Source: Dimorphilus gyrociliatus (lineage: Eukaryota > Animalia > Annelida). Taken from it: a stretch of 64,000 nt of DNA. A program made the position numbers and the translations under genes. This document shows positions 6,721-35,678 of the stretch, one piece after another. The notes beneath the pieces were generated by a model. It worked only from the letters and a program-made list of their open reading frames with translations. It did no database searches and was not told the DNA's origin. The stretch lies in contig CAJFCJ010000027.1 in NCBI GenBank assembly GCA_904063045.1, forward strand, positions 434,001-498,000, written 5' to 3'. Position 1 is the stretch's first letter. Every line of letters begins with the position of its first letter.

Positions 6721-8199
6721 AAGTGTGGGAGGAGATAGGTGACTTACGATGGGAATAGGTAAAAAGAGTAGTAAAAAATATGAAATAGGAGAGGTTGATG
6801 AGTATGTTGATTAAGAGAAAGCATAAATTACCAGCGGTAAACTAGAATATATAACAATCAATGCAACGCTTATTAGCTCCAATTCAAAAAAGGTAAAAAC
6901 GAAGCAATCTTCATTAATAATTATATAAGGTTTTTAAATTTTCATTAATTATAAGCATATTAGGTGTTGCAATTAGCGCATCGAGAACTTATAATACAAT
7001 CAATAGGAGCTTTGTAATACTGTTATTGAATCAATTCAACATTTATATACTGAGGGGCCTAGGAAGTAGATAAAAAAAAGCCAAGATTCCTCTTGTTCTA
7101 TTACAATGCTTACTGTAGTCCATTATATATAAAATAATAGAACGATGACAATTATCTATAGTAAAGTAGTGCGTTGTTTTCTTTGATTTTAAATAGGTAG
7201 TATCATGTCATTTTTGATGTATCATTATACGTTTGCAAGAAAAGTTATAAATACAAATATTTTCCTATTGTATAAAAATGACGCTGTATATACAAAGAAG
7301 AAATCTTCTTCCTTAGCTTCCTAGTATATTTCTCCTTAAGTAAACTATTAAATGTTCTCTTTACTATTATTATACATAATAAAACGACAAAACTAAAATA
7401 TAGATGTGCTCGTCAGCTATCAGTTCGATAGCGCCATCTGTCTGATAGTTAAAACATTAAAATTTACTGAGTACATTTCAAGAAATTACCTATTATAGAA
7501 TTTATAAAAGTATCACTTAAAAACTTGAAGAAGAAAGAACAAAGGAAAATTTTTAACATACGAGAAAGATTTTGGCTAAAAATAAAAAATGAACTTTTTT
7601 TATCAAACTTAAAAAGGTAATTAAAAAAAGTACTAATAAAAACAGATATGATAACATTATATGATTTTAATTAATTAATTAATTAATTAGATAATAAGGT
7701 AGACTTTGAAAAAAAAAACAACGAATTTTGTGAATGCAAGTATAAGGATGAAAACTACTCAAAGACTTTGTAGGAGGGTTATACAGCTCTGTAGACGTTG
7801 GTAGTTTTTATCGTGTATTTATGTTATACTGTACATATATATATGTAAGATCGCTCTTTAGCAAAAAAAAGGCAAAATCTAAATTAAGAGCAATTTGAAA
7901 CAAGTAAAGGATATTAGCATAGCATTTATATGACATAAGAATTACTAATAATGCTTAGTTAATGAATGTTAAAGTCTTATACGTTAAGAATTAAATATAA
8001 AATTTGTTTATAGTGTAGTGTTTACTGCAAAGATTTATGAAATATGCTATTTCTCTTTAAAATAAAAGAAAATATTATCATTTACAAGGAAAGAGAATAT
8101 ACTGGACTTGGGAGAGAGGGAAAGGGAGATAGATATACATATATATATAGAGTTAGGAGATATGGAGAGAAAAAAAGAGAGATACAGGGAAAGACAGAA

Positions 8200-8205
<6 letters not shown>

Positions 8206-8232
<27 letters not shown>
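8206..8232. repeat. (GA)n microsatellite
   Basis: Pure GA tract. Confidence 0.9.
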
Positions 8233-11200
8233 TAGGAAAAGATAGTTATACAAATAGATAGATAAATAGGAAAGGTATACATATATACTACATATACACT
8301 GTATATTAGTATATATACATTAGAATGCAATACGACTCGAGAAAGAAAAAGTGAAGAACATGCAGACAAAGAAAGTTATTATCAGTATGATATTTCGTAT
8401 TGTCAAAAAAATAAGAATAAACAACCGAAACAAGAGGAATTGCTAGAAAACTTATTAACCAATTTTTTGATTAAATATAACCGAAATTAAGCTATAGCTA
8501 ATCGAATCTCCGTAAATAATTCCTTATAAAAAACTCGTGACATTTCGTCTCTGTATATATTTCTACTATGACATTTTTACCATCGAATCGGGTCTAACTA
8601 GGTGCGATCAGTTCTCGTTAGGAAGTTGGCATTTTAGCTTGCAGTGGAGTTACAATACACCAGATTAGATTTAGTCCTGGCGGCCATAAATAAAGACATA
8701 ATGTTAACAAGTTGTTCTTTTCCTTTACATAACAAATTGTAGAATCTATTTTTAGAAAGCGAAAAGAAAATAGACAAATTTTTTCGCCTAATTTACATAA
8801 TTTTTTTGTTGAAAAAGTTGCTAAATATAAACAAACAAACAGCTGATAATCGTAACCTTTTAAGGTATCAATGGCGAACGTTCGATCTGGAAACTTTTCA
8901 AATGTTATCTTAGGTTATAACTTATTCACGAAATGTTTATTTTTTATGGGGATGTAGTAAAATATCTGATAAAGAATAATTTTTGTCGTTTATATATCTA
9001 AATACTAGTGATTTTCTCTACTTTATCATAAAAGAAAAGGCTGAGCAAGAGAGGAAGAGAGGGAGAGAGAAGACTTGACAAAAGTTTTGCTCTCTCCGTG
9101 AATCATACATCTCATATTATATTATATTTTACCATACTTCTTATAATCTGTTAATACGCTTGTACATAACAGAAGCTTGCTATGTATTAGATATTTAAGT
9201 TTGTATAGGAGGAAAAATACCTGACCAAATACTTCTCATATCAGTATTTACAGAATCCTATAACACAAGCTTTCTATGATTACCGCCAAATTCTCTCATC
9301 TGTATGTACATATGCAATAGATAGTCCTATTAGTAGACGTTTTTCTTTCCATCTTCTAAACTATACAATAGTCTCTGCTAACGATGATAGCATAATTAAT
9401 TATCCCCTGTTGATAACTTTAACTCTTTATTTTCAATTATAGACAATAGGTTTCTATCGCCAAGCGTTATTGTTGCTTTTTCAATAATCAATAATTAGGG
9501 TAAGAGAATGATGTAATAACATTTATTAATCAAAGTTAATATTAAGGCAAAATAGAAATCTATTGATTGAAGAAGATTTAAAATGTTTTCATTCTCTTTA
9601 TATAGACAGTGTTATTATTTAAACAGTAATTTAGTAGCAAGTTGTACATTTAAATCGAATTAATAGATAAAGAAAGAGTAAAGCCGAAAAATCCCAAGAG
9701 ATATTTCTAAAAGAATGTTTTTCAATGTCATTCTTCCCTTTTTTTTAAGCCATTGTCACAATACTTAAAATTTAGTTAAGATTGTATTACAATACATTTT
9801 TTTTTATATTCTATGTTCTTGACGACGAACGATTGAAAAAAAAACCTTTTCTTATACGTGAAAATTAATATAATGTATACATATATAAAGAAGTATTCTT
9901 AGTTTTCTCACACAGACAACTCTCTAGTCGGTTAAATGAAACCATAAACATAGCGAATGTATATGTAGACTATGTATAATAATAATATATTCTTTGTGTG
10001 TAATTGCATAGATTATTTTTATACAACTGTAGAAATTACAAGAGTTCATCGCAAATATTAGATAACGATTTTATGGTTACCTACTAGTTACAGCGCAGCT
10101 TACTAGTAACTATAAGTAGTCAATCTGCATTCTTCATAGTAGCAGGAAGGAAAGAAATCTTTGACAAAGGGTATATTTTTATTTTTATACTTTTCATTTG
10201 TTTATCATCTCGTCTCTGGCGATAATAAACAAAGAGTAAGAGAGTAAAAAGTTTATAGTGTAGACTAATGTTTAGTCCATACGGTATAGGTTTGCTTATG
10301 TACAATTTAATAAAACCTTGTAGAGATTCAATATATTCCTTAATAGGTAAAAACAACGAATTGTAAATAGACATTGTATAAAGAAATTAGCAAGTACATT
10401 CTTTTATGCATAAACTGTATCGAGTTATAATGCACGTATGAATACACATATAAATTTATACTGTATATATATATATGTATATACGTTTGTATACTTTACA
10501 TTATTTGTATATTACAAGATATATATATCATGATAAAGTTTAGGAAAGGATGTATATTTCATTTCGGGTATAATGTATACAGAGATTGGCATACATGCAG
10601 AACAATCAGTAACCACAAGCTATAACTAGAATTACTAATCTTGCAGGCTTTTTTCTCTTTGCGTCTTCTTTTTCCCTTTTATTTCTATCGTTGATAAAAG
10701 TTGAAAGTATTTACTTAATAGAACATTCTAGGAAATGATAACTTTTGCTAAAAATTGTTAAAGTATCAATTAGCGTGCTGATAATATTTAGAATTAAATA
10801 AAGTATATAGTTACTTTATTTTTAGTTTGTATATTTTCTATTTACTTTCTTTTTTCATTAAAAACAAGTAAATATTTTTGAATTACTTAATTAATTAATT
10901 TATCAATTAATTAATTTATTTATTAATTTATAAACTGTATGTTTTATTTATTTCTTAATTTTAAGTGAAAAAGCTTCAATTTGTTGTAGGGTATTAAGTT
11001 GTTATTTTATAAGTTCTGCTTTTATTTCCTATTAATGATAGATACGTAGTTAAGTTAAATTTAGGACAGAGGAAATAATAATATATATATAAAAAAAAGA
11101 GAGTAAAAGAAAAAGCACTTAAGTATATTTCGTGACTTTTGGAGGAGAATAATCAAACTTTATAGACTGGAAGATTTTGTGAACTTGATTTTATCCTTTT

Positions 11201-11788: not shown

Positions 11789-12079
11789 ATGAAAAGAGTA
11801 TCTAATCACCAAACAATATTACCATCAAATGGTTCAACAAACTGTTTAAGTGAACGTCAATGGCATTACTTTTTAGCATCATCTTTAATAACTTTTGCTC
11901 TTGGATTATTTATTCTTCTCCTATATAAATTAATTGCCTTCTCCTGCTCGAGATGGTCAAGAAGGAGGAAAGAAAGGAACGAAAACACAGGTCAAGTGGA
12001 GGCGGTTAGTTTTATGACAAAATTGAAATGGATGGCTGAAAGGTGGATATCGGGACAAACTGTCACTGGGCGGATATTG
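11789..12079 (+). CDS. slo: slo exon 1 (S0 and S0-S1 loop)
   Basis: MKRVSN...[12 protein letters not shown]...[11 protein letters not shown]|GTTAGT. Confidence 0.9.
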
Positions 12080-15000
12080 GTTAGTTATTTATATCCATTT
12101 ATATTATTTAGCGTATCTTTTAATTATATTTTTTTACCAAGGTATCGCTTTCCTGTGTGCTTAGTATCGGTTCGCTGATTATTTATCTCATCGATGCTTC
12201 AAGGTAGGAATTAGTTTGCAAATTATTATTTTTAAACAGAGGCGTCATATATAGACACTTCGTATATTATATAATATTGTTATCCATCTACTACCTTACT
12301 GACGTTTTTTATCTATTCCACGTCCCTCCTTTTCAGTATCTCCTTCAAAAAGTCCCTCAAGTATTTTTTACTCTTTTTTATGCTTTATTTAATTTTTACC
12401 TGGAAGGCATCGTTCCCCGTAAATTACCAATTAAACTATAGTAAAGGTTTTTCTTAATAACAAGCAACAACGTTCTTGTTTAAAGAAAGAAAAGAAAAAT
12501 CTTGTTACTACCTCTCTCTTATTCCCTTTTGTACAAATGTTTTTATGAAAGTTTTCATTATTTTCTTAAACTGATCATGTTTTATTAAGACAATGTATTA
12601 GGTAGATTTCTTTTCTCTTTCCCTTCCTTTTAAGGGAAATTATTAAAACGTACTTTCTGTTTATATATGATTTAACCAAAATAGACATTTTATTTAGTTA
12701 TTGCGGAGTAGGATTACTAAGAAAATTTCGTTAAGAAATCAAAGAGGGTAAACAAGGAAAATAAATTTGTTACTAAGGTGGTATATTTCCAAAAATGTAC
12801 AGATCAGAGAGAGGAGTTGTTAATCTACAAACCAGTCATAGTATATAGAATGTTATACATAAACAACTAGATGAATATAGTTCAACTCATTTAGTCATAG
12901 ACAATATATAAAGTTAAAAAAAGCAAACAAACAATACATTAAGTTTGTAATAGGTTATTATGATATCCGACTACCGACCACAAAACTAATAAATGAAAGA
13001 ATGCGTCAGTCAGATTATCATCGTATTAAAGGTTTTAATATTTTTAATATCATATTTCTAGGTAAAAGTTTACAGTTTAAGAACTTACTACAAAATATAA
13101 AAAAGTTTTCAATAGTGCTGTATATTTTTCCCATTAACGAAAATCTTTTATCGAGCTTTTCCCTATTATGTTTTATATATTTAACTGTTTTGTATTGTGA
13201 TTTTTACCCTATTTTTTTTTACATAATATCCGCTCCCTCTACAACAGTATAAAAGACAATTTATTCTATTTTATTATTGTTTCTTTTACGAAAATAGTCA
13301 AAACAAAAAGATTTCTTTTTTATATTAAAACCCCCCTCCTCCCTCCTCCGTTCACTTTCTTTTTACTTTCTTTTTCAAAGATTATCTATAATAGGGTTAG
13401 AGTATTAAGTACTAGTAATAATATTAATAATGAAGATATAACCGATGCAATTCAATTTGATAAAAACAACTTTTTTTTACTTTTTACTAAAAACCCTTTG
13501 GTTATATCTGCTCTTTTTCCTATCTTCATTATCTTTATGCTCTCTTTTTAATTAATTAATAATATTTTTACTTGTCTAACAAACACAAAGGATGCTACAC
13601 ACTCTCCAGAGGCACTAATTTCTTTTTTTGCTTTATACTCTTCTTATCATTATTTACAAGATAAGAATGAATATGAACAATAATAGTAACGTATAAACAA
13701 ACAAACAAAAAGAGTTGGGATTGATCTATTTTATACTTTCTGCAATTTTATTGAATCATATTTGTTTCCTTATTAATATAATTAACAAAGTTAGTACAAG
13801 TTGATATTATACAATGTTTTGTTTAGCGTCCGTGTCTTTAACACGTTCTTTTAGAAAAATTTACAAACAACTGTTTTTCTCTTTTTCATTTCTTTTTCTA
13901 GTACATTTCATAGCTTTTTGTTATTAAAAATACTATTAATAATAGTAATCATATTGCTAGGTAATACTAATACTAGTAAAAGGACATTTACTAATAGAAA
14001 TATAACTTACAATTAATGAATAGACGTTTGTCCTTTCTATTAAACTGCAGTTCACTTTAATAAGCTTTATTAGCAAGTTTTATTAATTGTTTATTTCTAA
14101 ACAGTACATATATATATATCATATTGTTTATTACTAGTCTTTACGTTCGTATTATGTATTTAATGCATAAATTAAGAAATGATAGTACTATCGGAAGTTT
14201 AATCTTCTAAAAATAAGTCTTCTATGTATTTTTTTTAAATAGATTGCTCACTAATCTGCTCTTACCGGAAGTAATCTTATTTTCTTGTCCCAATTGGGAG
14301 AGTATAGGGTTCACTTTTTTTAAGGTGTAGGCTTTAGTTTTAGTAAGGTGAATTAATTATGTAAATGATGTTTTGCATTATATTGTGTTCTGTATCTATC
14401 AATATATATTTATTTACCACCAAGTACGACACTATAGCAACTTACTATGTAAAATTAAAGACAAAAACGGTAATTACAAGTACATATCAGGGCTGATAAA
14501 TGAGAAAGAAATTGGGAAATTGGGGGAAAAGTGTAGAAAAACGATTTTCAATGAAGCGTAAAAGTGCCAACGTTTCACTGCGAGCAACGGCACAACAAGA
14601 CATTGACGATGAATCAAAGACTGAAAGGGAAAATACAGTTTTTACATAGGTTTTTTTTATATTATTATCTACCTCTAACATTATACAACGTTTGACGTTA
14701 ATTGAAGGAGATTTGAAAATTGATAGGCCTAAAGAAAGCAGTAAAGAGTAGGAGAAAATGATTGAACAATCTCCTTTACTGTAATACAAACAATATTTAT
14801 GGATGTTCGATTCTATTTGGCTGGCAATCGGGATGCTAGATATTTAAATTGCAGAAACCTCAGACGTCATAGGAAGAAATACAAATACATTTATGCATAA
14901 TGAGGAACTTTGAACAGTAAAAACTGAATATATATTTATATATATAAAAGGAATTTCTACTTCCCTCCTACCCTCCCCTCCATGCCCCTTCGTCCCTCTT

Positions 15001-16740
15001 TTTTTTATTGGCATAGTACATACTGACCTTCAATTCCTGAAAGCCTGACATTTTCCCCTAATTTTACATTTTAACCCAGTTTTGAAAGTTGGTAGAGTGA
15101 AAAGAATCTATTAGAAAAATCAGTTTTAACAGTAACGCAAATGTTATCCATTCAATATCAACTAAAGAGGTATGCGCAGTATTGCATCTCCTTTGAAGTT
15201 ACTAGCGTTACCGCTCAAAGTGCTACACTAACGAGATGAGACTAGCGTGTTGGAGTCTATTTTTCGACGCCTTTCGCGCTGTCGGCGACAACTCTGAGAA
15301 AATAAGTAGACACGGACCGTTTTTACAATAAAACTTTTCCTATAAGTTCTCAGACACCCCGCTGTTTCGTCTTTATACACATCCTTCATTATTTTTTCTG
15401 TATATTTACTTTATATATGTATTAATATAAACAATATATACATGTACATATATACAGTATATATATATATATAGTATATATGTATACATATATATATAGT
15501 GTATATTTATAGATGTTAAGATTTGTACTCTTTTATGCCTATATACTGTATATATATATATATATACAGTATATATATACAGTATATTAGTCTCTAACTT
15601 AATGTCAAAATAACCTACATAATATTTTACTAACGTTTATCTTCTTTCAAGGTTTGGCAAAAAGGTAGAACAATGCAAAAGTTGGACTGAAAGCCCGGCA
15701 CAACAAATCGATTTTGTTTTCAACGTTTTCTTCACATTTTATTTTATTATTCGGGTAAGACATACCTGACATTAGAAACAAAAGCTATACAATTTCTTTA
15801 ATAGTAAACTTCCTTGTAGGATATTTAAATACGAATGCCAAAAATTATTTATCAATATTACTCTCCTACCTTTACCTACTAAAAAAAACGACTCTCGTAT
15901 CTTAAAATATCAAATCAAAAAGTTATTTTACTCACTTATTGCACGTCAATAAGTGAAAATAAACTTGACACTCTTTAGTTTATCCTAAAAAAGGAATAAC
16001 ATCTGCATGCACTATGACTTGGTGTGAATTCGTGGAAAGATTCACAAGAAAATGTATAATTCAAAGTCATTCCTCTATTGAATAGTTCTAAACTATGAAA
16101 AAAACATATCTTAGTATAGCCTTTAGCGGTTGTTTTTATCTCAATATATTTCATATATCCGTATATTATCCATTCACTTAGCCTATACTGTTCTTAACTG
16201 GGAATGCAGAGCCAATCAGGAAGCGAATTAGATGTAATTCTCGTCAAATTACATACAGTATTTTTGGCATCGCATTACCTGTGTATATCTCTGCTATAGG
16301 TTTATCTATAATACTTCTTTTTTTTCAGTTTACGGCTGCGAATGATAAACTGATATTCTGGCTGGAAATGCACTCAATTGTTGACTACTTTACTATTCTA
16401 CCTGCTTATATGGCAATATACTTAGGTAGACAGTGGCTAGGTAAACACTGATTTTTAAAATTCATAAAATGAAGGGTGAGAATATTAATTTTAAAACTAA
16501 AACTAGAAGATAAAGATTAAAAAATCTGATAACGAATTAACGTTAGATTATTGATGTAGCTCTTTTTAATAACTGAATAATCATTAAAAGATGAACCACT
16601 ATCATTTTTTATCAAGTACAGATTTCTAATTGAAAAAGTACAATTAAATCTCTTTTCCCGGAAAGAGTTTATTTTATAATTAGTTGAAATACTTGAAATA
16701 TATATTAATTAGACAAAAGAGAGAAAGGGATAGAGAGAAA

Positions 16741-16777
<37 letters not shown>

Positions 16778-17096
16778 AATAGAAAAGAAGGAAGCATAAA
16801 TATACAAACATATACAATACAAGTACATTATTATCTATATATAATTTTAACGAAAGTGGTCTTGCTTTCTTAAATTTTAATATAAAAAATACTATTTATC
16901 TATAGATGAACTATATCTCCAATTAATTTATTTATATTTAATATTAAAAAAAGGATAGAGCTAACACTTAATGCCAGGTAGCTAGGTATTACTTTCCGCT
17001 TACATTACTTTTTTAAATTACAACCCTTATGTGGGATTAATAACATTTTACCCCTGTCAATCAGGCTAGTTTTTTTTACTTATAAAGCTATAAATG

Positions 17097-17159
<63 letters not shown>

Positions 17160-19801
17160 CATATATTAAATTTAACAGTATGTACTTTATTTGACAATAA
17201 GTCCCTGTTATTCTTATTGACAGAATTTCATTGCAGTTATATAAAAATATAAAATATAAAGAGATTCTTATCACTTTAAGCTTTAGTTGCAATTTTCTTA
17301 TGTAAAATCACCGATAGAACTATAGTACTTTGCTATTCTTCCTTGTTATGGTACTAGGAAAAAAATAAAAGCTTCAAAGTCGAGAATAAATATCTTACAA
17401 TCTATCTATCTAGCTTGCTAGGCATCTCTCTTTACTCTTTATGTATGTATTTATCACCATTTCGTTCCCTTTTTTGTGTATTTCTGCACCTAATTTGAAT
17501 AGTGAAGTGTGTAAGAATAGTAGTAGATAGAGTATGCCTTAATTATCATTAATCGAACAATCTTGCTCACCAGTAAAGTAACAAAAAGTCTCTCTTTCTT
17601 TCATTTAAATTGATAGAAGATAGGATAGCAGTAAAATTCGGTTATTTAGTTTCTTCTTTTTGAATTTGCCAATTGAATAAGAAATTTAATTAGCATAAAT
17701 AAACTTATTAGTAAAACTTTAAAATTGAATAATTTTACTTAATTACGTGTAAAGAAAGCTATTTATTTGTTAAATATATAGAGCTATTATTAAGTATGTA
17801 TATATAGGCAATTATTCTGTTTAGTAGCATATTACTGTCGCTATTTAAGTAAAATTTTGATTTGTTCATCAGTAAACCAGTTAATTCGGTATAAAAACCT
17901 TAGTGAAATATATGCAGTAGCTGTGATCTAAAACTCATGTCAACACGGCAGTCTCATTAATTCTCGCCCTTCATCGACCTAATTTTATTTATCTTGAAAA
18001 GATGGACGAAAGGAGCTTAATGTAACATACACTCAGAATGTATCATATATACTATATATATATATATATGTATATAGGTTATTTATAGTCCAAATTGATA
18101 TTGTATATTTATATTGTATAAGAAGATTTGGGATTGGGGGGGAAAAAGTAATAAAAGTTAACCTTTCGCAATAGAGTATAACCCCTAAGAAATAATAATA
18201 AGAGATATGAAAATGAATAAGATTTTCTTATCCCTTTAAAAGAACTTTGACAGATAGGAAAATTTAAATTATCAAGATTCTAAATTAAATTTCATCATGA
18301 AATATTGATAGTCAAAGACTAAGTAGTCAATGATTTCTAGTCCACAATAGATAATTATTAAAATACACGCAAGAATATGAAAACTGGTAAAATTAACTTT
18401 TAAGGTATTCTTTCAACTTTTAAAAGACCATTAATTACGTAATTAAATATGTGAAAATTTGTTGAAAAGGTTATCTCTTTTCTCCTTCAAGTAAATTTTC
18501 CTTTCTTAATCCATCTTTTCCGAAATTCATTTTATTTAATAGAAAAAAAACAGAGGGAAATCATTTGTGGATGGAATATTTTCGCTTATTCAATAAAGCA
18601 TATTGTATTATCTATTAAATATAATAAGCTCTACGTGTGTATTTCACTATAAAATTTATTAAGGTATATATATAATACCTGTCTCAGGTAATTCTAATAT
18701 CCGTTCTATCCCTGATTTCCCTCTAATTTAAGCATTACGAATAAGATTATTTCTGACCAAAACAGGCTTTCGTTTCCTGAGAGCCCTGCGCCTAATTTCC
18801 TTTCCCGATATCCTGCAGTATTTAAGTTTGTTACGGACAAGCAACAAAATCCGGTTAGCTCAATTACTTAGCATGTTTTTCGGAGTTTGGTTGGCTGCAG
18901 CTGGCTTTGTTCATTTGGTGGAAAATTCAGGTGATCCATTCCATGATTGGAAAAATTCGCAGTATTTAAGTTACTGGGACTGTCTCTATTTTTTGATGGT
19001 GACAATGTCTACAGTTGGCTATGGCGACATATATTGTGTTACAGACATTGGCCGAACTTTTATAGTTTTTTTCTTACTTTTTGCTTTGGCTATATTTGCT
19101 AGTAGTGTTCCGGAAATTTTGGATATTGTTGGAAAGCATCCCAGATATGGAGGAACTTATGAAAAACCAGCTGGTGTTAGGTAGGACAGTATTAATTCAC
19201 TTTATTTAATTCTCTCCTCCTCTCACAACAAAGAGAACTTTAAAGTATTTAATTTGCCCAGAGGGATTTGCACAAAATAACATTATTAATTGACCTAAAT
19301 AACACCAACAGCCACCAATTATAGTTTCCCTTCGACGTCCTCAAGCCTAGACCGCTCAAAAAAACTCTTTTCTAAACAAGGGGGTAATAGCTCTTGGAAA
19401 TAACCGCTAAATGTCTTTAATAACTGCTGTAAGTTATATGAGAGTGCATTTTCCGATTTCGGTTAAAAAGGAGAAAGAATGAAAAGAAGAGTAAAAAAAA
19501 ACACTTTATGTAATTGTATTGCGTGCTAAAGTGTTATGATTTCACAAGAGAAAAACTTGAAAACAAACTAACCGAACTAGTTGACGTATATATATATATA
19601 TTGTCCCATAAAGCGAATTTAGAGGAAATAGGTACTTGAATAAAAAAGGAAGAGTACATGATAGCTAAGATTTTACGTATTAAATTATACAGTGTAAACA
19701 AGTAGAGGGACTGATAAGCTAATACATTATCTAAAGTTTATATAGTATATTGATGAAAGTGGCTGTTCACTAAAGACCTATGTCGTATAACTTAATTTAT
19801 A

Positions 19802-19838
<37 letters not shown>

Positions 19839-20929
19839 TACATGTATATGTCTAAGTAAACTTATTTACTTAGATATAAAAGAATCCATTTTGGGTGAAT
19901 AAAATAACTAAAAATTTTAGATGAAGACACTCTTACAAGAGTATTTGGATGTATTATTTGAAGTAGTAATACGTCTTAGCTTGAGGAGAATATTTCATTC
20001 ATCCAGAAAGAAATTTTCTTATAGATATTTTCAGCATGAAGTAATTTAATATTATACTATACAGTATACCATTTAATTTTTCCTCAAAACTATTAATAAT
20101 TACTATGTAATCTACATTGTAAAAAAAGAAAACTCTAATAACTTATTAATACTACATAGTTTAACTAGTATTTTATTTATTTTATAATAAAAAGTATTTA
20201 GTAATTAATTTTTTTTTTAATTTTGATAAAACTTATAAAGAAAAGAGAAGAAAAAAATAGTAATTACTCTTTTATAGTACTTTTCATTTTTTAAGTAGGG
20301 AAACCTTCTCTAAGATTTTTTTTTTCTTTATTATTTTTGATTAGAAGGGGAAAAAAATATCTACTAGTATAAAAAAAACACTTATTAATTTTAATAAATA
20401 TGAACATTCACCAATCTATCCTTCGTCACCTCTTACCCTTACAGACATATAGTTGTTACCGGACATATCAGCTACGAATCTGTTAAGAACTTTTTAAGAG
20501 ACTTCTTACACGAAGATCGAGAGAATAAGAATGTTAAGTGTTTGTTTTTGGATAGGTAAATAACTTCTTTTATTTTATCTTATATCTATAGATAATTCTA
20601 GAGAAATTGGTTAATGTTTTTTTCTTACGGCGGAAGGCAATATACTTTGGCTTAAAATACATGCCATACTAACCTATACTTAATAACTTAATTATACATT
20701 CTAATCTACTGACCATCCGGTTGTCTCTATAAGAAATAACGATTTACACTACTCAGTACATAATGTATAGTCAGTAACTAAAGATTTAGTTTACATAAAA
20801 AAAATAAGGAGACGTAAAACTTATACTTTATTCTTAGAATAAGGAGAGGATTGCAATCATATCATTTACTATATCAAACAAACATAATCAGCCATTCCTG
20901 GAACATGCAGTGAATATACCCATATGTAC

Positions 20930-20965
<36 letters not shown>

Positions 20966-23900
20966 ATTAATAGAACTCCTAATGAATTAAGGAATAACAG
21001 TTTAAATACAAGTTACAACTTTAAAATTCTCTATTTAAATCAAACTTGTCTCTGCGTTAAATATAGAATTTATATCTATTTTCATTACTTACTACTTGGA
21101 ACGGTACGAAGGTATTTTTTCTTCTATTTTATATCTTCTAGTAGAATGATCAATTTCTTTTAATGGGTTAATTATTTGAAAGCTTTTGAAACTATTAGTT
21201 TCTATTCTCTCTTTTCAGTAAAAATCCAGACTTAGAACTAGAAGCGCTCTTCAAAAGACATTTCACACAAGTCTGCTTTTTTAAGGGCAGCCCTTTGAAC
21301 ACTAACGACTTGGAGAGAGTCAAAGTAAGCGTTTATTGACCTTTTCCTCGGTTTCCTAATCATCCCTCATCTTTACAGCTAAAATTAGCTGATGCCTTTT
21401 TAGTCGTGGCTGATCCGAGAGCTTCGGATCCGGATGCGGAAGATGCAGCGAATATCATGAGGGTTATATCAGCTAAAAATTATCATAGTGATATCAGGAT
21501 CATAATTCAGCTTATGAGATTTCATAATAAAGCTTTCCTCGTGAACTTGCCTTCATGGATGGCTCAGGATCAAATTATATGCTTGGCAGAGATGAAATTG
21601 GGTTTCATGGCACAAAGTTGTTTGGCTCCCGGTTTTTCTACTTTGATGGCAAATCTTTTTGCTATGAGAAGCTATAAGAAGGTTTGTTCTCTTTCTTACC
21701 CCTTAGTTTTTATGGGCTTTGATTCAAATATAAAAACGAAAGAAAGAGTAGAGAAGAGTAACTGACAGCAAGAGGGAGGGAGAAAGAAAGAGAGTGAGAG
21801 AGAGAGTGTGTGTGAAAGTGGAAGATTTTCGTAGTCAGTAATCGAAAGAGAGAGTAATTGAATGAACGAATGAATGAATTAAAGTAACCCTATAGTAAAA
21901 ATGATAGTAAACGAAGGAATTGGAAGAGAAACAAGGATATACTTAAAAATATAACTTTAATGGTGGATTTTTACAAAAAAGAAAGAGAAAATTAAATGTA
22001 CAGGTCCTTCAAAATAATTTATCTCAAAAAAACTTAAAAGATTTTCATCTATCTTTTTTTTCCCTCCTCTTTGTCTTCCTAATTATATTTTAAAAGCTTC
22101 AAGAAAAGCAGCTAGTCAAGGTAACAGTAAAGTAACTAACCGAAAATTTTCATTTTTTTTCACTAAGTGTCAATTAATCGAGGCTTTGATCATTGGTATA
22201 TTTTGACTGCAATTATATTAATTTCTCTTAAAACACACTAATTACGTGGCTTTCAATCTGAGAAGCAAAACATTTTCATTGTTTTCTTTATTATTATTAT
22301 TTTATTTTCATTATTATTACTTTATTAACATCAACAGTAGATTAGAATTTTAAAATAGATAGTATCTTTTAGGTGTTATCTGATTTTCCTTTTTCAATAA
22401 AAAGAGAAAAGAAAAATACCATTAGGAGTGGTACCAGTGGGACGATATTAAGAAAAGATAATGGTACCCTATGCTTGTTTGTAAATAGAATATATACAAT
22501 ATAATACACTTAAAATTCTTATTTATATTTAACAACTCAATATTGTTTCTAGAAGTTTTCCTATTCTTGGGAAAAATATAAACTAAACAGATAGAATAGT
22601 ATATCTTTTACAATATTTGTAATTTGTATCTAATGTAGTATTCTATTTGTTTAGTTTCTTCCCCTTTTCTCTTCTCTTTTTACATAACCTAAACTCATTG
22701 TTAAGACTTTGGGAAACCTTTGCCATTTGCTTCAAAGTTACTATGTAGTCTTAAAACCATTATATTGTAAAGCCATATAAAGTTTCTTAGAACTGTTCTT
22801 TTTCATACTACAACACCTGATATATAAAATAACGAAAGAAAACTAACGATAGTAAAAAGACCAATTGAACAGCTACTATATTTTCCAGGAACAACGAATA
22901 TTTAACGTATTCATTGGGTCAGCTTTTTATTATAAGAGTTGTACAGGAGCCGTCGAGTACAAAAAGAATTTACGAAAGGCTTTCGTATTTTTTTTTTTAT
23001 AAAAATTCCATAATTAGACAAAAATATCGATAACTTTAATGTTTTCTAAGGCTTCTATAAAATTCCAGTATAATTGCTGTAATTTTCACTTTTATATATA
23101 CTGCAATTATATAGTTTTTTCATATTAAAGAAAACGAATTAGTTGTCTTCTTTGTACTTTTTTTTTTAATAACTTATCAATTTAAGCTATATAGATTTAA
23201 ATTATTATGGAAGATTTTATCATTTCATTCTAGTATCCTTTCTCTTGAGCCCATCCTATCTCATTCCATTTCTGCCTTTCTATATATATATATATATATA
23301 TCTATATATATCTTTTCTTTTTTCTCTTTTTTGAACATTAATCATTTATAAAATTAAATCAATGGCGATTAAACTAAGAGTGAGAGAAAGATGAACGATA
23401 GGTGAGCCAAAAGAGGATACAGTTTGCTTTTTTTTCCGTTACCTTTTCCTTATTTTTTTCACTATTGTTATTTAAAATGGTTGTAAATTTGTTGAGCTTT
23501 TACGATTTCTTTGTACGATGTTTGTTAATAAATAACAAACAAACAGAAGAATATTCCCTAAATGTCTACATTTTTGATTCGTGGAGAAAATGATAAGCGA
23601 AGTGAAAACGTGATATATTCAAATTGTTTCTTCCTTTACAGTCGGAAAAAGCTGCTAAATGGCAAGACGATTATCTTCGAGGAGCTGGTATGGAAATGTA
23701 TTCTAGCTACCTATCCGAAGCCCTGCACGGCCATACTTTCCCTCAGGCAGTCGAGTAAGTGATTAAAGCCAAAAACACGATGATTAATTGTCTGGAAAAT
23801 TACAATCGAGGACAGCGCTTTATTTTTTTCATAACATCTATTAGATCCCAACCGCTTAGTAGTCATATAGTAATATATAAAAAATTGCATTTATCCATCC

Positions 23901-24489
23901 ATCTCTAGGCTATAAACATAAATATATATACTGTATAGATAGTATATTTACATAGATAGACTCTAAAATCACTATCTATTTATATAAAAGATGTTCATCA
24001 CTATAGATTGACATTTTACCCAAAATAATCAGTAAGTTTGAGTAGCAAGGAAGTTCCTACTTCTATTTTGTAGTTAAGATAGTATGATAGAACAATTTGA
24101 AAATGATGTTACAGTAAGATTTACTAATGAATAAGGGAAATTTCAGTCGTAATTTATCAGAGCAACGAGTGATCATTATTACTGTACAGGGAATAGAAGG
24201 CGACTGCATACAGTACAACGCTTGTTTTAAATACCTTTTATATAATAGTAAATTGGAAACTAGTCTACAAAATTTCTTTTTTATAACGAATGTCAAGTGA
24301 TTCTTTATTAAAAGGCTCAGACATTTAATTTTCTATCCTTTGTTTTTTTTTCCATATTACAACAAATTTTCCTATTCTTTGGTTTTTGTTTTTATTTTTA
24401 TGCAGACTAAGCAAATTCTATGCTCGTAAAAAATTCCGAAAGCATAACCTTATATTTTTAAACAGTATATATAAATATATATAATGTAT

Positions 24490-24532
<43 letters not shown>

Positions 24533-27500
24533 AAGAAACGAAAGGGTAGCGAAAGAATAGCATTTCCCAATAGAATAAAAGGTTAAAACACGAAAGATGT
24601 TGTTAATAAGAGACTTGAATGCTTATTCAAACAAGCATCGTATTCAGAAATAATTTAATCAATCTTTAAAATGAAAAACTAATATATTGTCTAAATATAT
24701 ATATACTATATATATATATATTTATATATATATATAGGTACATCTCTAATTTGGTTTCCTACTTTCTTCCATTTTGATTGATTAGTTTTCTTATGCCAAA
24801 TTTATATCTTTAAAAGGTACAATATAAAACATTGTTTGGTTAAGAAAAATGAAAGTAATAAATTCTTTTTCCTTTATTTTTTTTGTTTCCTTCTCTCTCT
24901 CTCTCTCTTTCTCTCTTCTTTCTGATTTCTATATTCGAAAAAATATACAAGGAAAAATGATTTTCTACGTTTCTTTTTCTTTGCTTCATTTCGTCTACCC
25001 TTCTCTCTCTCTCTCTTTCTCTCTCTCTCTACTTCTTTTGTTTCTCACTAGTTTTTTATTATTCTTAAACTAATGAAAATGTGAAAAAAGAGAAATAAAA
25101 TAAATGATGATATGCTAAAGAGCATACTGTCTTACGCATTCTTCACTCTCTGCATATAAATGAGAACAAGATATGGCAATTGCAAAGAAATTGAAACCTT
25201 GAGTAAATTAGAAGTCTAGAACAGAAAGTGCACGTGATATTCATGTTTAAATACCTTGAAAACAATCGAAGCTATACTCCTCTCTCAATTAATAGCCTTT
25301 TAGAATGTTTCAATTCTATTCGATTATCGTTAAAAAATTTGCTCAAGTACTCAATTAAATCTAATACCTGATATTTTAATATTAAGATAGGCTAATAAAA
25401 TGATAGCAACGCTATCTCATTAAATATTTACTTTTAATATATTCCTTTGTCTTTTTTTGTTCTTTTCGATAAATAGAATCTGCTTTTGCAAGTTGAAACT
25501 TTTATTAATCGCCATATCTGTTTATTCGGAAGATGGAGAAGATTATCAAGTTGTGTTAAATGCAGGAATAGATTATATTATAGACAGAGATACTAAAGCT
25601 TTTTTCATATGTGAATCGGAAGAGGAAGTTAAACGGTTAGTATAATTAAATAATAGACAGAGAGAATCTTTATAGAATTGTACTGGTTTATTAAAAATAG
25701 AGCTCAAAATTTCTGCAAGCATTGTCATTGGTATGAGAAAAACATTCGAAAAATTGTTAAATGCAATTGCTCCAAGCAAGGTGAGCTTTGCATAAATTAT
25801 ATTCCATGATAAAATTCTTTTAAAAAAAAACCGATCGAAAATGCAGATAAATCGACAATTCCAGTAGCAACTTGTAAACAACAAGATTCTCCTTCTACGA
25901 CACCAACATCTGATAAGTCAGCTGATGATGTTCTACCAAATCCATACTGCAGACGTATTCAAATCGATATCACCAATCATTCGCGTTCGAATAGTCAGAG
26001 TCCGACTTCACCTGATGCCCCCGAAGTTTTCAAGTAATTAAATTGTTTGTTACATGCTGGGTGGTTTTCCTTCTTTCGCCCTTTGCCGTCTTTCAAATAT
26101 GAGGAAACCCTCCGAATGAGGACGCTTACTAATCAACCAAGCCCCTTTAGTGAAATACTGTTAATTAACAAAAATTACACTTCTTTCAACTATTTTCGTT
26201 CTATAATGAATTTTGAAGAAGATGACGCATTTCTCTATATAATGCCATTAAACGCTGAACGCCGTAGCAAATTTTCCCTCCTTTAATATTAACTTATTAC
26301 TGGACAAAGTTAACTTAATCAATTATCATTTAATTACCTTCTTTTCAGTTAACTTTAAATCTTATCTTGAAAGGGAATTGTGGTAAATTTTATTGATAAT
26401 ATTTCCCTTTGATGAATGAAATTCTGTATTTAACATAGTTTTTATCAGCGAAATGAGAAACTTTGCCTCTAAAAATAGAATATTTGCACCAAGAGAAACT
26501 CACTCTCTCTTTCTCTCTCTTTTTCACTCATATTTATCGGAAAAATAGGGAAAAATTAAGTCTTTCTTCCCACTTTTCCCGCCACCCGTCGTTTTATATA
26601 CCATAATAACTTAACGCCATCTATTAGAATTGATAACATAATGAAAGAAAGCGTTAATTGTTAGAGCCATTAATTTCTCATTACTGGTAATCGTTTTTAT
26701 TCCTATTCCAGTTCGACATTGAATACAAAGAGTTTATCTGCAATTGTTCCACATGTCCTTGCTCAAAAACGCCAACAACAAGAAGAAAGGAAAATGATTA
26801 AATGCGTTGAACATTTTGATTCAACCGGCTTATTTCATTGGTGTGATGAAAGAAAGTTCGAAGAGGCCGTTCTGGTAATAAATTCTCGTAACTCTTTCGA
26901 TTTTCTCCTATCATTTGTTCCTTTCATTTTTTTTTCTAGTCTCATAGAAAGAATAGAGATTTACTTAAGAAGTTGAACAAACATATAGTTGTTTGCTTGT
27001 TTGGCGATCACAAATCACCATTAATTGGTTTGTGCAATTTCGTCATGCCGCTCAGGGCTAGCAGCTTTAAGTTGGACGATGTGAAGACTATTGTATTTGT
27101 TGGTAATGAAGAGTATTTAAGAAAAGAATGGCATTCCTTGGAAAATTTTCCCGACGTTTATGTAAAACCGGTAAGAAAAAAAATCCTTGCTCAATTCAAT
27201 TATCCTGTATTAGCAATAATAGATACTCTTCTCTCTTTTCAGGGTTCACCTTTAAATAGAGCTGATTTAAGAACTATTAAGATAAACCAGTGCCATATGT
27301 GTGTAATATTAACAGCTAGCGATTGTCGATCGGACGATATAACCCTGGTCGACAAAGAAGCTATCCTTTGTTCTTTGAACATAAAGACGATGACATTTCA
27401 AAATGTTGCCGATGTTTGGAAATGCGCATCTCCCCGCCGAACCTTGGCAACTTTGGCCTTGCTTCGAGGTTTGTTTTATTTATAAAATATAAGAAAATAT

Positions 27501-27605
27501 AAAGAAAACTAATAAACATTTCTTTTTAATAAGTATATACCAAATTGATACTTGTGTATATAAGGCATTGAGTATGAATTTACTTACTCTCTGTTAAATC
27601 TATGA

Positions 27606-27645
<40 letters not shown>

Positions 27646-28802
27646 TATATATATATCTGACAGTTCATAAGAAATTTAACAATGAAGAAGAGGAAATTGA
27701 AAAGTTCGTAAAGCGGAAAATCAGTGGCTATATTAGTAAAACTAGTAATAGAAAAATAACAAAGTCGATAAGCGATGAGTTTTCAAACATTGTTAAGGAA
27801 AAGTGTAATCGAATTGCAGGTTGATAGTAAGAGAGATAGAAAGAAAGAGAGAGAGAGAAAAAAAGGAAGAAAATAATAAAAAAAAAACACTTGAAAAAAA
27901 AATATTTCTTTCTCTTTTTTTCTTTTGTTTGCTAAAAATCAACTAATAAATCACAGATTTTACCGCATTAACAAGTCTTTTTTAGCCTTTTTTTCCGTGC
28001 TTTTTCCGTTTTTAAATTACTTTTTTCTCCTAATCCTATTCATATTCTTTCATTTTCTGTTCGATTGTAGACGCCAGAAGCCTGACGCATCGACCTACAA
28101 CCGGGGCTTGCATTCCTATGATTACCGAGCTCGGTAAAGAAAATAGACATATACATATAATTAACTTTTTACACCTTTCTGGTTTAGGCTCTTTAGTTTA
28201 TTAATCAATTTTTTTTAACAGATAACGATATAAATGCTCAATTTTTGGACCAAGATGACGAAGATGACCCAGAGATGCCGCTTTATATGACTCAGCCTTT
28301 TGCGTGCGGAAGAGCCTTCGCTGCATCGGTTTTAGACTCGTTAATGAGTACAGTTAGTAGGCGTACTCTCTCACTCTTGATTAAGAGAATGATAATCATA
28401 AATTAAATCTTTATTTAGATGTTTTTTAATCCGGACGCAATGCACATAATTAGGTCATTGATAACTGGAGGTGCGACCAATGAATTTGATCATATAATGG
28501 CGGAAGGAGTCGGAGTCGTTAAAGGAGACTCTTCTAACGATTCTATTTTAACGAGAGATAGATGTAGAGTTGCTCAATTGACTCTGGAGGACAGCTACTT
28601 GGAACGCTATAGCTATAGCTCTTATGGAACTCTGTTTATCAAGGCTCTTCGCCATTATGGAATTCTTTGTTTAGGTCTTTATAGGCAGATAGATCCTCGA
28701 CCCTCAGCCGGATCATACAATAGATGCGTAGTGACAAATCCTCCCTCTGATTTTGCTTTATATCCGTCCGATAAGGTTCTATATTTTCAATATCCAAATT
28801 AA
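11789..28802 (+). CDS. slo: Slo1/BK large-conductance Ca2+-activated K+ channel alpha subunit (slowpoke/KCNMA1 family), divergent; 19 exons
   Basis: Exons 11789-12079, 12142-12203, 15652-15754, 16329-16440, 18766-19180, 20445-20555, 21219-21324, 21379-21681, 23642-23754, 25477-25635, 25701-25780, 25847-26033, 26712-26874, 26940-27170, 27243-27468, 27664-27819 (cassette), 28071-28133, 28222-28352, 28419-28802 total 3396 nt in one frame, all GT-AG. Motifs: S0, S4 RFLRALR, filter [12 protein letters not shown]1 ([31 protein letters not shown]), CKHCH, RCK2, calcium bowl [18 protein letters not shown]. Confidence 0.96.
12142..12203 (+). CDS. slo: slo exon 2 (S1)
   Basis: ccaag|[20 protein letters not shown]|GTAGG after a 62-nt intron. 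Confidence 0.9.
15451..15586. repeat. (TA)n tract interrupted by four CAG/CTG triplets
   Basis: CAG 15455, CTG 15546, CAG 15567, CAG 15580, each flanked by TA on both sides. Confidence 0.85.
15652..15754 (+). CDS. slo: slo exon 3 (S2)
   Basis: ttcaag|[34 protein letters not shown]|GTAAGA. Confidence 0.92.
16329..16440 (+). CDS. slo: slo exon 4 (S3)
   Basis: tttcag|[37 protein letters not shown]|GTAAAC. Confidence 0.93.
16745..16773. repeat. (GA)n microsatellite
   Basis: Pure GA tract. Confidence 0.9.
17101..17159. repeat. Compound (TA)n(GA)n microsatellite
   Basis: About 22 TA units directly followed by about 8 GA units. Confidence 0.92.
18766..19180 (+). CDS. slo: slo exon 5 (S4, S5, pore, S6, C-linker)
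   Basis: aacag|FRFLRALR...STVGYGD...[15 protein letters not shown]...|GTAGGA. Confidence 0.96.
19805..19836. repeat. (TA)n microsatellite
   Basis: Pure TA tract. Confidence 0.9.
20445..20555 (+). CDS. slo: slo exon 6 (RCK1 start)
   Basis: ttacag|[36 protein letters not shown]|GTAAAT. Confidence 0.94.
21219..21324 (+). CDS. slo: slo exon 7
   Basis: tttcag|[35 protein letters not shown]|GTAAGC. Confidence 0.94.
21379..21681 (+). CDS. slo: slo exon 8
   Basis: ttacag|[29 protein letters not shown]...[10 protein letters not shown]|GTTTGT. Confidence 0.95.
23642..23754 (+). CDS. slo: slo exon 9
   Basis: ttacag|[37 protein letters not shown]|GTAAGT; a different frame from the ORF-track ORF 23562-23762. 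Confidence 0.93.
24496..24529. repeat. (GA)n microsatellite
   Basis: Pure GA tract. Confidence 0.9.
25477..25635 (+). CDS. slo: slo exon 10
   Basis: aaatag|[13 protein letters not shown]...[13 protein letters not shown]|GTTAGT. Confidence 0.92.
25701..25780 (+). CDS. slo: slo exon 11 (CxxCH heme-binding motif)
   Basis: aaatag|[26 protein letters not shown]|GTGAGC. Confidence 0.9.
25847..26033 (+). CDS. slo: slo exon 12 (RCK1-RCK2 linker, Ser/Thr/Pro-rich)
   Basis: atgcag|[22 protein letters not shown]...[11 protein letters not shown]|GTAATT; phase 1-2 bridges the flanking exons. Confidence 0.8.
26712..26874 (+). CDS. slo: slo exon 13
   Basis: ttccag|STLNTK...[20 protein letters not shown]|GTAATA. 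Confidence 0.9.
26940..27170 (+). CDS. slo: slo exon 14 (RCK2)
   Basis: ttctag|SHRKNR...[27 protein letters not shown]...NFPDVYVKP|GTAAGA. Confidence 0.93.
27243..27468 (+). CDS. slo: slo exon 15
   Basis: tttcag|[10 protein letters not shown]...[16 protein letters not shown]...LALLR|GTTTGT. Confidence 0.92.
27608..27641. repeat. (TA)n microsatellite just 5' of the cassette-exon acceptor
   Basis: Pure TA tract ending about 20 nt before 27663. Confidence 0.9.
27664..27819 (+). CDS. slo: slo candidate cassette exon 16 (156 nt, phase 1-1)
   Basis: tgacag|...52 open codons...GCAG|GTTGAT; skipping preserves frame. Confidence 0.6.
28071..28133 (+). CDS. slo: slo exon 17
   Basis: ttgtag|[20 protein letters not shown]|GTAAAG. 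Confidence 0.9.
28222..28352 (+). CDS. slo: slo exon 18 (calcium bowl)
   Basis: taacag|[43 protein letters not shown]|GTTAGT. Confidence 0.96.
28419..28802 (+). CDS. slo: slo exon 19 (end of RCK2, stop)
   Basis: atttag|MFFNPDA...SLITGGAT...RDRCRVAQL...CLGLYR...VVTNPP...FQYPN*. Confidence 0.94.
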   Translation: MFFNPDAMHIIRSLITGGATNEFDHIMAEGVGVVKGDSSNDSILTRDRCRVAQLTLEDSYLERYSYSSYGTLFIKALRHYGILCLGLYRQIDPRPSAGSYNRCVVTNPPSDFALYPSDKVLYFQYPN

Positions 28803-30165
28803 AAAAAATAGTCTAAATAAATCTTTTGCCTCTTTCATTCTCGTATTTTAGGTTTTTTGCCTACTTCCTTACGAAACTAATAAAGATAATGCGAAGAAAG
28901 AAATTCGAAAAGAGTCTAACGACGAGATTGAATCAACCCAGTTATAAACGTTTCTTTATTCTTGTTTATATTTCTTTTCTTTTCCTTTCTTTTTGTTTTT
29001 TTTCTACAAATAACTGTTGTGGTGCTTCCAAAAAAAAGAGTAAAAAAAACATTATGTTAGTTAAGAAGAACAACGTTTAGCTGGCCTAAGGTTTTATTGA
29101 AATGTATGTATTCGTATAAATCTCTCTATGTATATCTATACTGTATATCTAGAGAGTATATGTATATTTGTATATAACTTTTGTAAGCAAAACAACGATT
29201 AATAAACAACGAAAATTCTGATTGTTAATTATGATTTTTCTATAGTTGAAAAATAAATAACCAAGAAAAAAAAAGATATTAAATTAATATTTCTTCTTTT
29301 TCATTAGTCTTTTTTTCTTTTTTATTAATTTCTGTCACTTTTTCAGTTTGTTGTTAAAGGAAGTATTTAATAGAAGAAGAAAAAGACAATGATAAAAGGA
29401 GGGGAAGAAGATGAATTTAATTAAATAAAGAAGAATGAAAAACATATAATAACAATAATAATAATAAAAAGGAATTAACTATTTTTCTCGATTATATTTT
29501 CTCATTGCTATACAAAAACGTTGCCTTTTCAACTTAACTGTCACCAATAGGCCTAAAAATGCATAAATATAGAATAATTTTGTCAAACGCCTTCGGTTTT
29601 TATTATTACTGTAGGATAGTCTCTTTTTAAAGCTTACTGCATACTGTATACAGTATATATATATATTCTTTCATTAAAAGGCATTTTGATGAGAATAAAG
29701 TCAACGACAGAAATAACAACCAGAAGCAATATTTCTCTATCAATAACTTTTAGAGTTTTCTTTTCAACATTCAATAAAATAAGCCTATATATTAAACTTA
29801 ACAATTGTGTTGAATGATTACTGTCTTAAATAGGTATAATTTCTCTATTCGTTTACCAATAGACAGATACAAGCATCGTTTGAATAATAATAGAAAAGAA
29901 ATTCAATACTGTAAATATAGCTATTTTATGAATAGAATAAAGCCTAATGTAGAATTTTTATATAAAGTGATAATTAACTTATCTTCTTAAAGATTATTCT
30001 TATTACTTGGTAATTTTTGTTGCGGGGCAATTTATATAATGAATGGTAACATTATTTTATAATAGAATATATAGAATAGACACTTTTTCTTCAATTTCCA
30101 TGTTTATCAAATATAACAATAACTACTGTCTTCGGTGCATTGTGTTGTATATACAGAATATACAG

Positions 30166-34870: not shown

Positions 34871-35678
34871 CTGTAGATTTATTCATCTAAAATTAGAAAT
34901 GATAGCTATACGAATAATATGACCTAAGATCTCTTTATTAAAAAAACACTGTTCTCTTTTTTCACTGTATTGTACGTTATAAAAACCTGCAGTCGATCAG
35001 TTTTGAATTTCCGATTAACCTTGACCAAAATCTAATCTAGGATGATCGACCGTAGAACGAACTGAAATGACGTATATATTTTCAGGGGGACATCGGATAA
35101 CTGCCCCAACGGATAGAAGAATAGAAAGAATTTTCTTCATTTTATCTTTTTGTTTTTTTTTCCATCTCTCCTTCATTTTTAATGAATTAATAATACAGTA
35201 CTTAATTCTAATAAGATAATAAAAAGCTTACCTCAATCATACTCTTTCCTACCCCAAATACTAATTGGATGACATTAGATTGATGGACTCGTTCAATTTT
35301 TAAAAGTGTAGAAGTGTCTAGATGAAATTCGTTGGATAATTCTGCGCTCTTTCGTAAATCCTCTTCTCTTAAATCTTCTACCCGAGTCAGACTTCCGTCG
35401 GCTAATTCGATAATAGAACCCTTCCGAAAGTGAGCCGGATACAAATCAGTCGAATCATCATTTTGGACTGGCCTATGTACATTTCTATTAAGAGGAGGAT
35501 GAGCCGGGACTGGATATGGTCTGTCTAATCGTCTATGAGCCGGGTTGACATAGCCGAGTAGATTCAGGTCGTTATAGAAGTGTGGTGGAACAATAGTTTG
35601 CAGGTAGTAATTTGGTATGGTCACGTGACAATCCGGGTTGCGGCGCATGTGCGAATCTGGCGTCCTTGTAGGTAACAT
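34670..35678 (-). CDS. Atx-1: Ataxin-1-like protein, AXH domain only, no polyQ; 2 coding exons, 215 aa
   Basis: Exon 35678-35232 (...LYPAHFRKGSIIELADGSLTRVEDLREED...VFGVGKSMIE|GTAAGC) plus exon 34870-34670 (ctacag|VRVLAAIEHPFFVLKKGWSSHDPQATLRRYGLLCDGLNIGDVCISL...PA*). FxKGSIIxLAxG, EHPFFV, GWSS and GDVCISL are AXH hallmarks. The second exon is missing from the ORF track. Confidence 0.93.

Follow-up and report, generated by a model that had tools for sequence, protein, structure and literature searches.

The window analysed here, that is, the whole stretch of 64,000 nucleotides from contig CAJFCJ010000027.1 of the annelid Dimorphilus gyrociliatus (positions 434,001 to 498,000, forward strand), carries on its plus strand a gene for a BK-type potassium channel, below called the window gene. 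Overall, the results make it likely that this gene encodes an expressed Slo1-type (BK) alpha subunit of a paralogue lineage which is separate from canonical Slo1, so far annelid-only, and remodelled in its Mg2+ pocket. The gene corresponds to the public protein DgyrCDS13736 (P0178; CAD5125529.1, UniProt A0A7I8WBT4), which was retrieved by an exhaustive profile search with the RCK1 exon and by a word-indexed search with a member of the clade described below, and which maps exactly onto 18 GT-AG exons at 11789-28802. In the isoform DgyrCDS13734 (1102 aa), a splice at 28775 leads to a last exon at 28852-28947, giving 19 exons and a coding sequence of 11789-28947. With positions counted along the window and residues numbered as in mouse Slo1, the exons are as follows.

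11789-12079, plus strand: exon 1, with the start codon, the S0 helix and the S0-S1 linker; the W placed at the D99 position is codon 12029-12031 (exact spliced mapping, PDB alignment, multiple sequence alignment).
12142-12203, plus strand: exon 2, the S1 helix (spliced mapping).
15652-15754, plus strand: exon 3, the S1-S2 loop and S2, with D153 and R167 kept (spliced mapping, alignment).
16329-16440, plus strand: exon 4, the S2-S3 loop with N172 (AAT, 16341-16343), and S3 with D186 (spliced mapping; joined to exon 5 in transcript contigs).
18766-19180, plus strand: exon 5, S4 (R207, R210 and R213 at 18771-18791), S5, the filter TVGYGD (from 19011), S6, and the C-linker with P339 and V342 (19167-19178) (alignment, spliced mapping, transcript contigs).
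20445-20555, plus strand: exon 6, the start of RCK1, where D362 and D367 are kept and the E374 position is K (AAG, 20536-20538) (alignment, spliced mapping; transcript contigs without differing letters).
21219-21324, plus strand: exon 7, RCK1, with Q397 and C at the E399 position (TGC, 21274-21276) (alignment, spliced mapping, transcript contigs).
21379-21681, plus strand: exon 8, the RCK1 core with M513/R514 (alignment, spliced mapping, transcript contigs).
23642-23754, plus strand: exon 9, E535 of the RCK1 Ca2+ site (GMEMY; GAA, 23693-23695) (alignment, spliced mapping).
25477-26033, plus strand: exons 10-12 (25477-25635, 25701-25780, 25847-26033), the end of RCK1 and the RCK1-RCK2 linker, with E at the S600 position (alignment, spliced mapping).
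26712-28133, plus strand: exons 13-16 (26712-26874, 26940-27170, 27243-27468, 28071-28133), RCK2 (alignment, spliced mapping, Pfam).
28222-28352, plus strand: exon 17, with the Ca2+ bowl at 28239-28274 (alignment, spliced mapping).
28419-28947, plus strand: exon 18 (28419-28775; in the 1079-aa model it reads on to a stop at 28802) and exon 19 (28852-28947, in the 1102-aa isoform), the Slowpoke C-terminal domain (spliced mapping, isoforms, Pfam).

On the whole, the protein has the family-level features of BK alpha subunits, namely the S0-S6 domain, the K+ filter, a tandem RCK gating ring, the Ca2+ bowl, the RCK1 Ca2+ site and the voltage-sensor charges. Pfam recognises Ion_trans, Ion_trans_2, Slo-like_RCK (two copies), BK_channel_a and Slowpoke_C, with E-values of 1e-67, 3e-31 and 1e-33 for the RCK and C-terminal domains. 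Searched exon by exon, the gene has its closest solved structures in Drosophila Slowpoke and Aplysia Slo1 (E about 1e-42), then in human Slo1 (1e-37) and then in Slo3 (1e-28); its S0 is alignable to that of Aplysia Slo1. Compared with canonical Slo1/BK alpha (mouse and human KCNMA1, Aplysia Slo1 5TJ6 and Drosophila Slowpoke 7PXE), it is alike in architecture, in Pfam domains and in the filter TVGYGD, as well as in R207, R210 and R213 with D153, R167 and D186 beside them, in the RCK1 Ca2+ site (D367, R514 and E535, plus D362), in the acidic 321/324 ring (VPEILD), and in the Ca2+ bowl, where Q889, D892, D895 and D897 all have their counterparts. An earlier reading of this DNA made from the letters alone, below called the sequence-only reading, had listed as retained N172, R207/R210/R213, D362/D367, M513/R514, E535, an E at the S600 position, and the second and fourth Asp of the Ca2+ bowl, and all of these are confirmed by alignments and spliced mapping. 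Counted from R207, N172 is the N of the motif AANDK, and the N of YLNRSW is N200.

The Mg2+ site is where the protein departs from this pattern. In mouse Slo1, Mg2+ is bound between D99 and N172 of the voltage-sensor domain of one subunit and E374 and E399 of the RCK1 of its neighbour, and activates the channel by repelling R213 (PMC4319557, PMC5677106). At positions 99, 339, 342, 374 and 399 the window gene reads W, P, V, K and C, whereas Slo1 has D, E (in invertebrates), K/R, E and E. The four residues of the inter-subunit site (D99, N172, E374 and E399) are thus read as W (or a gap), N, K and C, and judging from the alignments N172 is all that is left of it. The sequence-only reading had placed K at E374 and C at E399, and both assignments hold: AAG at 20536-20538 lies in an exon (20443-20553 in this alignment) that HMMER lays without gaps on residues 343-378 of human Slo1, and TGC at 21274-21276 lies in one (21220-21324) laid ungapped on residues 382-415, the human chains used (6v22 and others) having the same numbering as mouse. 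Its third assignment, W at D99, stands in part. The codon TGG at 12029-12031 is read as W99 by tblastn and by one MAFFT alignment, while HMMER (with Aplysia Slo1) and a larger MAFFT alignment put a gap there. In the tblastn match with an insect Slo protein and in the one MAFFT alignment, 17 residues of the window-gene protein lie ungapped against the segment that runs from WMTEAKD to ISGQT, with the W opposite D99. We judge the gapped HMMER version, in which D99 is deleted, to be less likely, since the ungapped one keeps more identities (M, T, K and A) and is common to the orthologue of Paralvinella, which has the same TKLKW motif in the D99 region. Position 99 is then either W or deleted, and an acidic residue stands there in no version of the alignment; a glutamate is found three residues downstream of W99 (motif MAERW). 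In addition, two more elements of the Mg2+ site, absent from the sequence-only reading, are altered. E339, an acidic residue in invertebrates (Aplysia E328), is P, and R342 (Aplysia K331), the basic salt-bridge partner of D99 (PMC5677106), is V.

These states are common to the annotated products of the gene. The public models (DgyrCDS13734-13739) bear only the label "BK channel", and the five annotated models share W99, K374 and C399 and diverge solely at the C-terminus; none of them restores an acidic residue at the Mg2+ site. Two annotated isoforms (P0301 and P0302, with 940 and 931 aa; window 28071-28802) diverge past exon 15/16 and stop upstream of the Ca2+ bowl; these bowl-less forms may be intron-retention products or real variants. 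The gene is also transcribed. Logan contigs of three runs (X2, X3 and X4), two of them from the genome study and one (X2) from another study with a different organism label, join exons 4 to 8 at 16440 to 18766, 19180 to 20445, 20555 to 21219 and 21324 to 21379, the joints being read at the predicted GT..AG borders with a two-letter ambiguity of the cut positions. The transcript pieces from exon 5 to exon 8, which include K374 and C399, have zero differing letters, and the lone other letter in the exon-4 piece comes from the aligner running five bases into the intron.

It is hardly credible, therefore, that the locus is an artefact or a decaying duplicate in which the three changes would be assembly errors or the marks of a pseudogene. 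No break interrupts the open frame across its 18-19 GT-AG exons, the spliced transcripts of two studies are identical at the K374 and C399 codons, the other gating residues are conserved, the orthologues conserve the new residues (K374 and an apolar 399), and the terminal branch of the window gene is short for its clade (0.37). A check for transcripts with acidic residues at 374 or 399 gave none in the contigs of the three runs. The transcripts and the conservation in orthologues rule out sequencing or assembly error, in line with what the sequence-only reading had argued, and a pseudogene is ruled out by the intact frame, the spliced transcripts and the conserved gating residues.

We then present the slo-like genes in the genome as a whole. 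Besides the window gene, the 77.9-Mb D. gyrociliatus genome has at least eight further slo-like loci (C3, C28, C9, C27b, C21, C1, C52 and C4). The check for a canonical slo copy elsewhere in the genome finds canonical-type Slo1 at two of them, C3 (1855000-1884999) and C28 (85000-114999), both compact and about 65-70% identical to insect Slo. They have D99 and E399, and position 374 is E on C3 and Q on C28. The possibility that the window gene is the sole slo gene of the animal, with substitutions spread over the phylum, is ruled out by these two copies. The N172 position is P in both of them (AAPDK), and even the canonical-type BK channels of Dimorphilus may have an impaired Mg2+ site. The loci C9, C27b and C21, of which C27b (C27 620000-649999) lies 140 kb downstream of the window gene on the same contig, belong to the same clade as the window gene and share with it P339, V342 where scorable (C9 and C21) and a basic residue in the former Mg2+ pocket; they differ in reading T at 374 and K/R at 399 and in having lost R213 (W, W and C), where the window gene has K374 and C399 and keeps R213. 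In these three copies the basic residue has moved within the former pocket, and the S4 charge on which it would act is gone. C1 lies much further off, with an identity of about 23-27% to insect Slo, and C52 and C4 were seen as 3-kb pieces only.

Two trees were built, a quick one of 54 rows and a careful one of 32 rows (LG+C20 with posterior mean site frequencies, PMSF), into which the paralogous loci entered as exon-wise tblastn matches placed on the coordinates of one reference protein. Both give a 10-member clade including the window gene, with support of 100 in the quick and 100/98 in the careful tree. Its members are the window gene, C9, C27b, C21, Paralvinella palmiformis KAK2146163, two Helobdella robusta proteins and three proteins from transcriptome assemblies (one from SRR23076780), and those from known species are all annelid. 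Within the clade, the window gene groups with C9, C27b and C21 (100/97), these three being on much longer branches. C3 and C28, on the other hand, group with mollusc Slo1 (93/97), while the window gene falls outside the canonical protostome Slo1 group. With canonical-type copies elsewhere in the genome, a separate clade, and K374 with an apolar 399 in other annelids, the "specialised Slo1 paralogue" of the sequence-only reading is supported. The clade is joined, with weak support (84/90), by a nemertean protein from Tubulanus (P0042) and one from Owenia (P0066), and the duplication may thus go further back, to a lophotrochozoan ancestor. The Tubulanus Slo1-like protein has K374 and V399 with R213 changed to G, and the Owenia protein has N374 and K399 with R213 changed to I. 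Long branches may also influence the deep position of the clade, as may skewed composition, which was flagged for C9 and C21.

Slo3 (KCNU1), the pH-gated sperm channel of vertebrates, is likewise a Slo1-derived paralogue with altered ligand sites, turtle Slo3 having T at E399. However, the window gene scores better to Slo1 (1e-42 against 1e-28), keeps the Ca2+ bowl and lies outside the Slo3-like clade of shark, gar and turtle. A Slo3-like convergence is ruled out by the kept Ca2+ bowl and RCK1 site and by the position outside the Slo3 clade.

The new states of the pocket are conserved within the clade. Position 374 is K in 7 of the 7 non-derived members and position 399 is C, V or A in the same 7 of 7, position 342 is V or I in all 9 scorable members, and position 99 is W, W, R, G, N or missing, being acidic in none of the scorable members. 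In all 10 members at least one of the positions 374 and 399 has a basic residue, and several are basic at 397 as well. By comparison, the 106 canonical protostome Slo1 proteins are nearly invariant, having D99 in 106, E374 in 105, E399 in 104, an acidic 339 in 106 and K/R342 in 106. Conserved states in the clade against different, near-invariant ones in canonical Slo1 show, therefore, that the pocket has been remodelled and then held by selection. Divergent Slo1-like paralogues from other phyla (tardigrade, echinoderm, flatworm, gar, shark and Slo3) often vary at the Mg2+-site positions, so that losing the Mg2+ site is in itself no more than a moderate surprise. The novelty lies in a conserved alternative pocket within a BK channel that is otherwise fully canonical, in an animal that has canonical-type copies as well.

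The sequence, splicing, transcription and paralogy of the gene, and the conservation of its new residues, are direct observations; its function is predicted by analogy with mouse mutants. In mouse Slo1, each of D99R, N172R, E374R and E399C abolishes the Mg2+ sensitivity of homotetramers (PMC4319557, PMC5677106). The window gene resembles the mutants E374R, E399C, D99A/E374R and D99R/E374R (Yang et al. 2008, 2013) in its basic 374, its Cys at 399 and its non-acidic 99, and differs from them in having Lys instead of Arg at 374, Trp instead of Ala or Arg at 99, extra changes at 339 and 342, and a protein background that diverges by 40-50%. Since the basic 374, the Cys at 399 and the non-acidic 99 come together in one protein, we consider it quite probable that the channel would be gated by voltage and Ca2+ and blind to Mg2+ at this site, and we strongly infer by the same analogy that Mg2+ activation is lost. 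A homotetramer would keep voltage and Ca2+ gating and lose activation by millimolar Mg2+ at this site. The pocket has passed to another conserved state, made of K374, a small apolar 399 (C here), V342, P339 and W99, in which the ammonium group of K374 would, as a permanent component of the interface, fill or neutralise what was the cation pocket. K374 may sit against N172 and the carbonyl of T396, and in Dimorphilus and Paralvinella it may stack on W99.

The effect of K374 on the voltage sensor needs more care. The sequence-only reading had proposed K374 as a built-in cation presetting the voltage sensor, that is, a tethered cation that mimics Mg2+, repels R213 and permanently biases the sensor to activation, with a left-shifted conductance-voltage relation without Mg2+. 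R213 is kept in the window gene, the clade has a basic 374, or 399 in the three derived Dimorphilus copies, and several members are basic at 397. In mouse Slo1, E374R alone moves the half-activation voltage from 187 mV in wild type to 136 mV (-51 mV), with 201 mV for E399C (PMC3557308, Yang et al. 2013), and R213 is open to interaction with charges close to the site (PMC3557308, PMC4319557). However, the E374R effect needs the negative D99, which is W here: D99A gives 198 mV and D99A/E374R 186 mV (a shift of about -12 mV), and D99R/E374R is wild-type-like at 195 mV (PMC3557308). Since the shift is small in D99A/E374R and D99R/E374R is wild-type-like, the activating effect of a positive 374 comes from attraction to the negative D99, and an acidic 99 is found in no member of the clade. 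Moreover, the three copies with K/R399 lack R213 (W, W and C), a misfit with charge repulsion of R213 as the conserved function. What stands of the proposal is thus the basic residue at 374 or 399 in all clade members, which argues, as far as sequences go, for some conserved role of a fixed positive charge. By analogy with D99A/E374R, the effect of K374 on the resting bias of the sensor is probably small, and we regard the tethered cation as a possible but doubtful account. Equally tentative is the wider proposal that an annelid Slo1 lineage, possibly shared with nemerteans, put a tethered basic side chain (K374; K/R399 in the derived copies) in the place of an exchangeable Mg2+ between voltage sensor and gating ring, by which an electrostatic coupling that depends on a ligand would become hard-wired.

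An opposite account would have the pocket still bind a divalent or other cation, by way of N172, the T396 carbonyl, the E of MAERW and the thiol of C399, with altered modulation by Mg2+ or Zn2+. Cysteine is able to ligate soft metals, N172 and T396 are kept, and the E stands three residues past W99. Yet cations are repelled by a lysine at this place, the orthologues have V or A instead of C399 so that a thiol ligand is not conserved, and the single mouse mutants E374R and E399C already abolish Mg2+ sensitivity (PMC4319557); we regard such a site as very unlikely. Rather less improbable, though still unlikely in our view, is that the subunit works mainly in heterotetramers with canonical Slo1 of the same animal, where the mixture of subunits would set how many Mg2+ sites work in each channel. 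The site is an inter-subunit one, mixed mouse mutants keep partial Mg2+ sensitivity (PMC4319557, PMC5677106), and the same genome has canonical-type copies. On the other side, the two lineages are about 50% identical, and with N172 changed to P in C3 and C28 the contribution of these copies to a site is itself uncertain.

Several points weigh against the reading that we prefer, a separate paralogue lineage whose remodelled pocket has lost its Mg2+ response. The loss of the Mg2+ response is a prediction from mouse data, carried over to a protein about 50-60% identical. At D99 the alignments allow either W or a deletion, and the transcript check covers 6 kb (exons 4-8), which lie downstream of the W99 exon. 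Weak divalent binding may persist through N172, the T396 backbone position and the E of MAERW close by, all of which are kept. The clade, finally, is sampled from a few species (Dimorphilus, Paralvinella and Helobdella) and three transcriptome-assembly proteins.

No other physical contact between the voltage sensor and the gating ring of BK channels is as well defined as the Mg2+ site, and knowledge of this site comes almost entirely from engineered mouse mutants. Here evolution has fixed another solution (K374, an apolar 399, V/I342 and a non-acidic 99) while every canonical sensor was kept, and annelid genomes hold a family of Slo1-like channels. The window channel could serve to test a tethered charge as a stand-in for Mg2+ and the shares of electrostatic and structural-bridging action in the Mg2+ effect, with the canonical-type copies of the same animal usable as controls. 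If the tethered-charge proposal were true, the lineage would be a natural experiment on how the interface charge sets the voltage-sensor equilibrium and the coupling of BK channels. A full-text search of a library of papers found no study of annelid Slo paralogues, of their physiology, or of a natural Slo1 with such a pocket.

Besides the channel gene, the window has a few other features, given below one per line.

1006-3804, minus strand: exons of a rhodopsin-family G protein-coupled receptor (Pfam 7tm_1, E 4e-15), with an NPxxY-like NPIVY in a downstream exon, located upstream of the channel gene.
35211-35684, minus strand: an AXH domain (the ataxin-1/HBP1 module, E 1.6e-10) encoded in a 158-aa open frame.

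The G+C content of the window is very low (28.8%), and many (TA)n and (GA)n/(TC)n microsatellites are found in its introns and intergenic DNA, for example at 8100-8300, 15400-15600 and 16700-17200.

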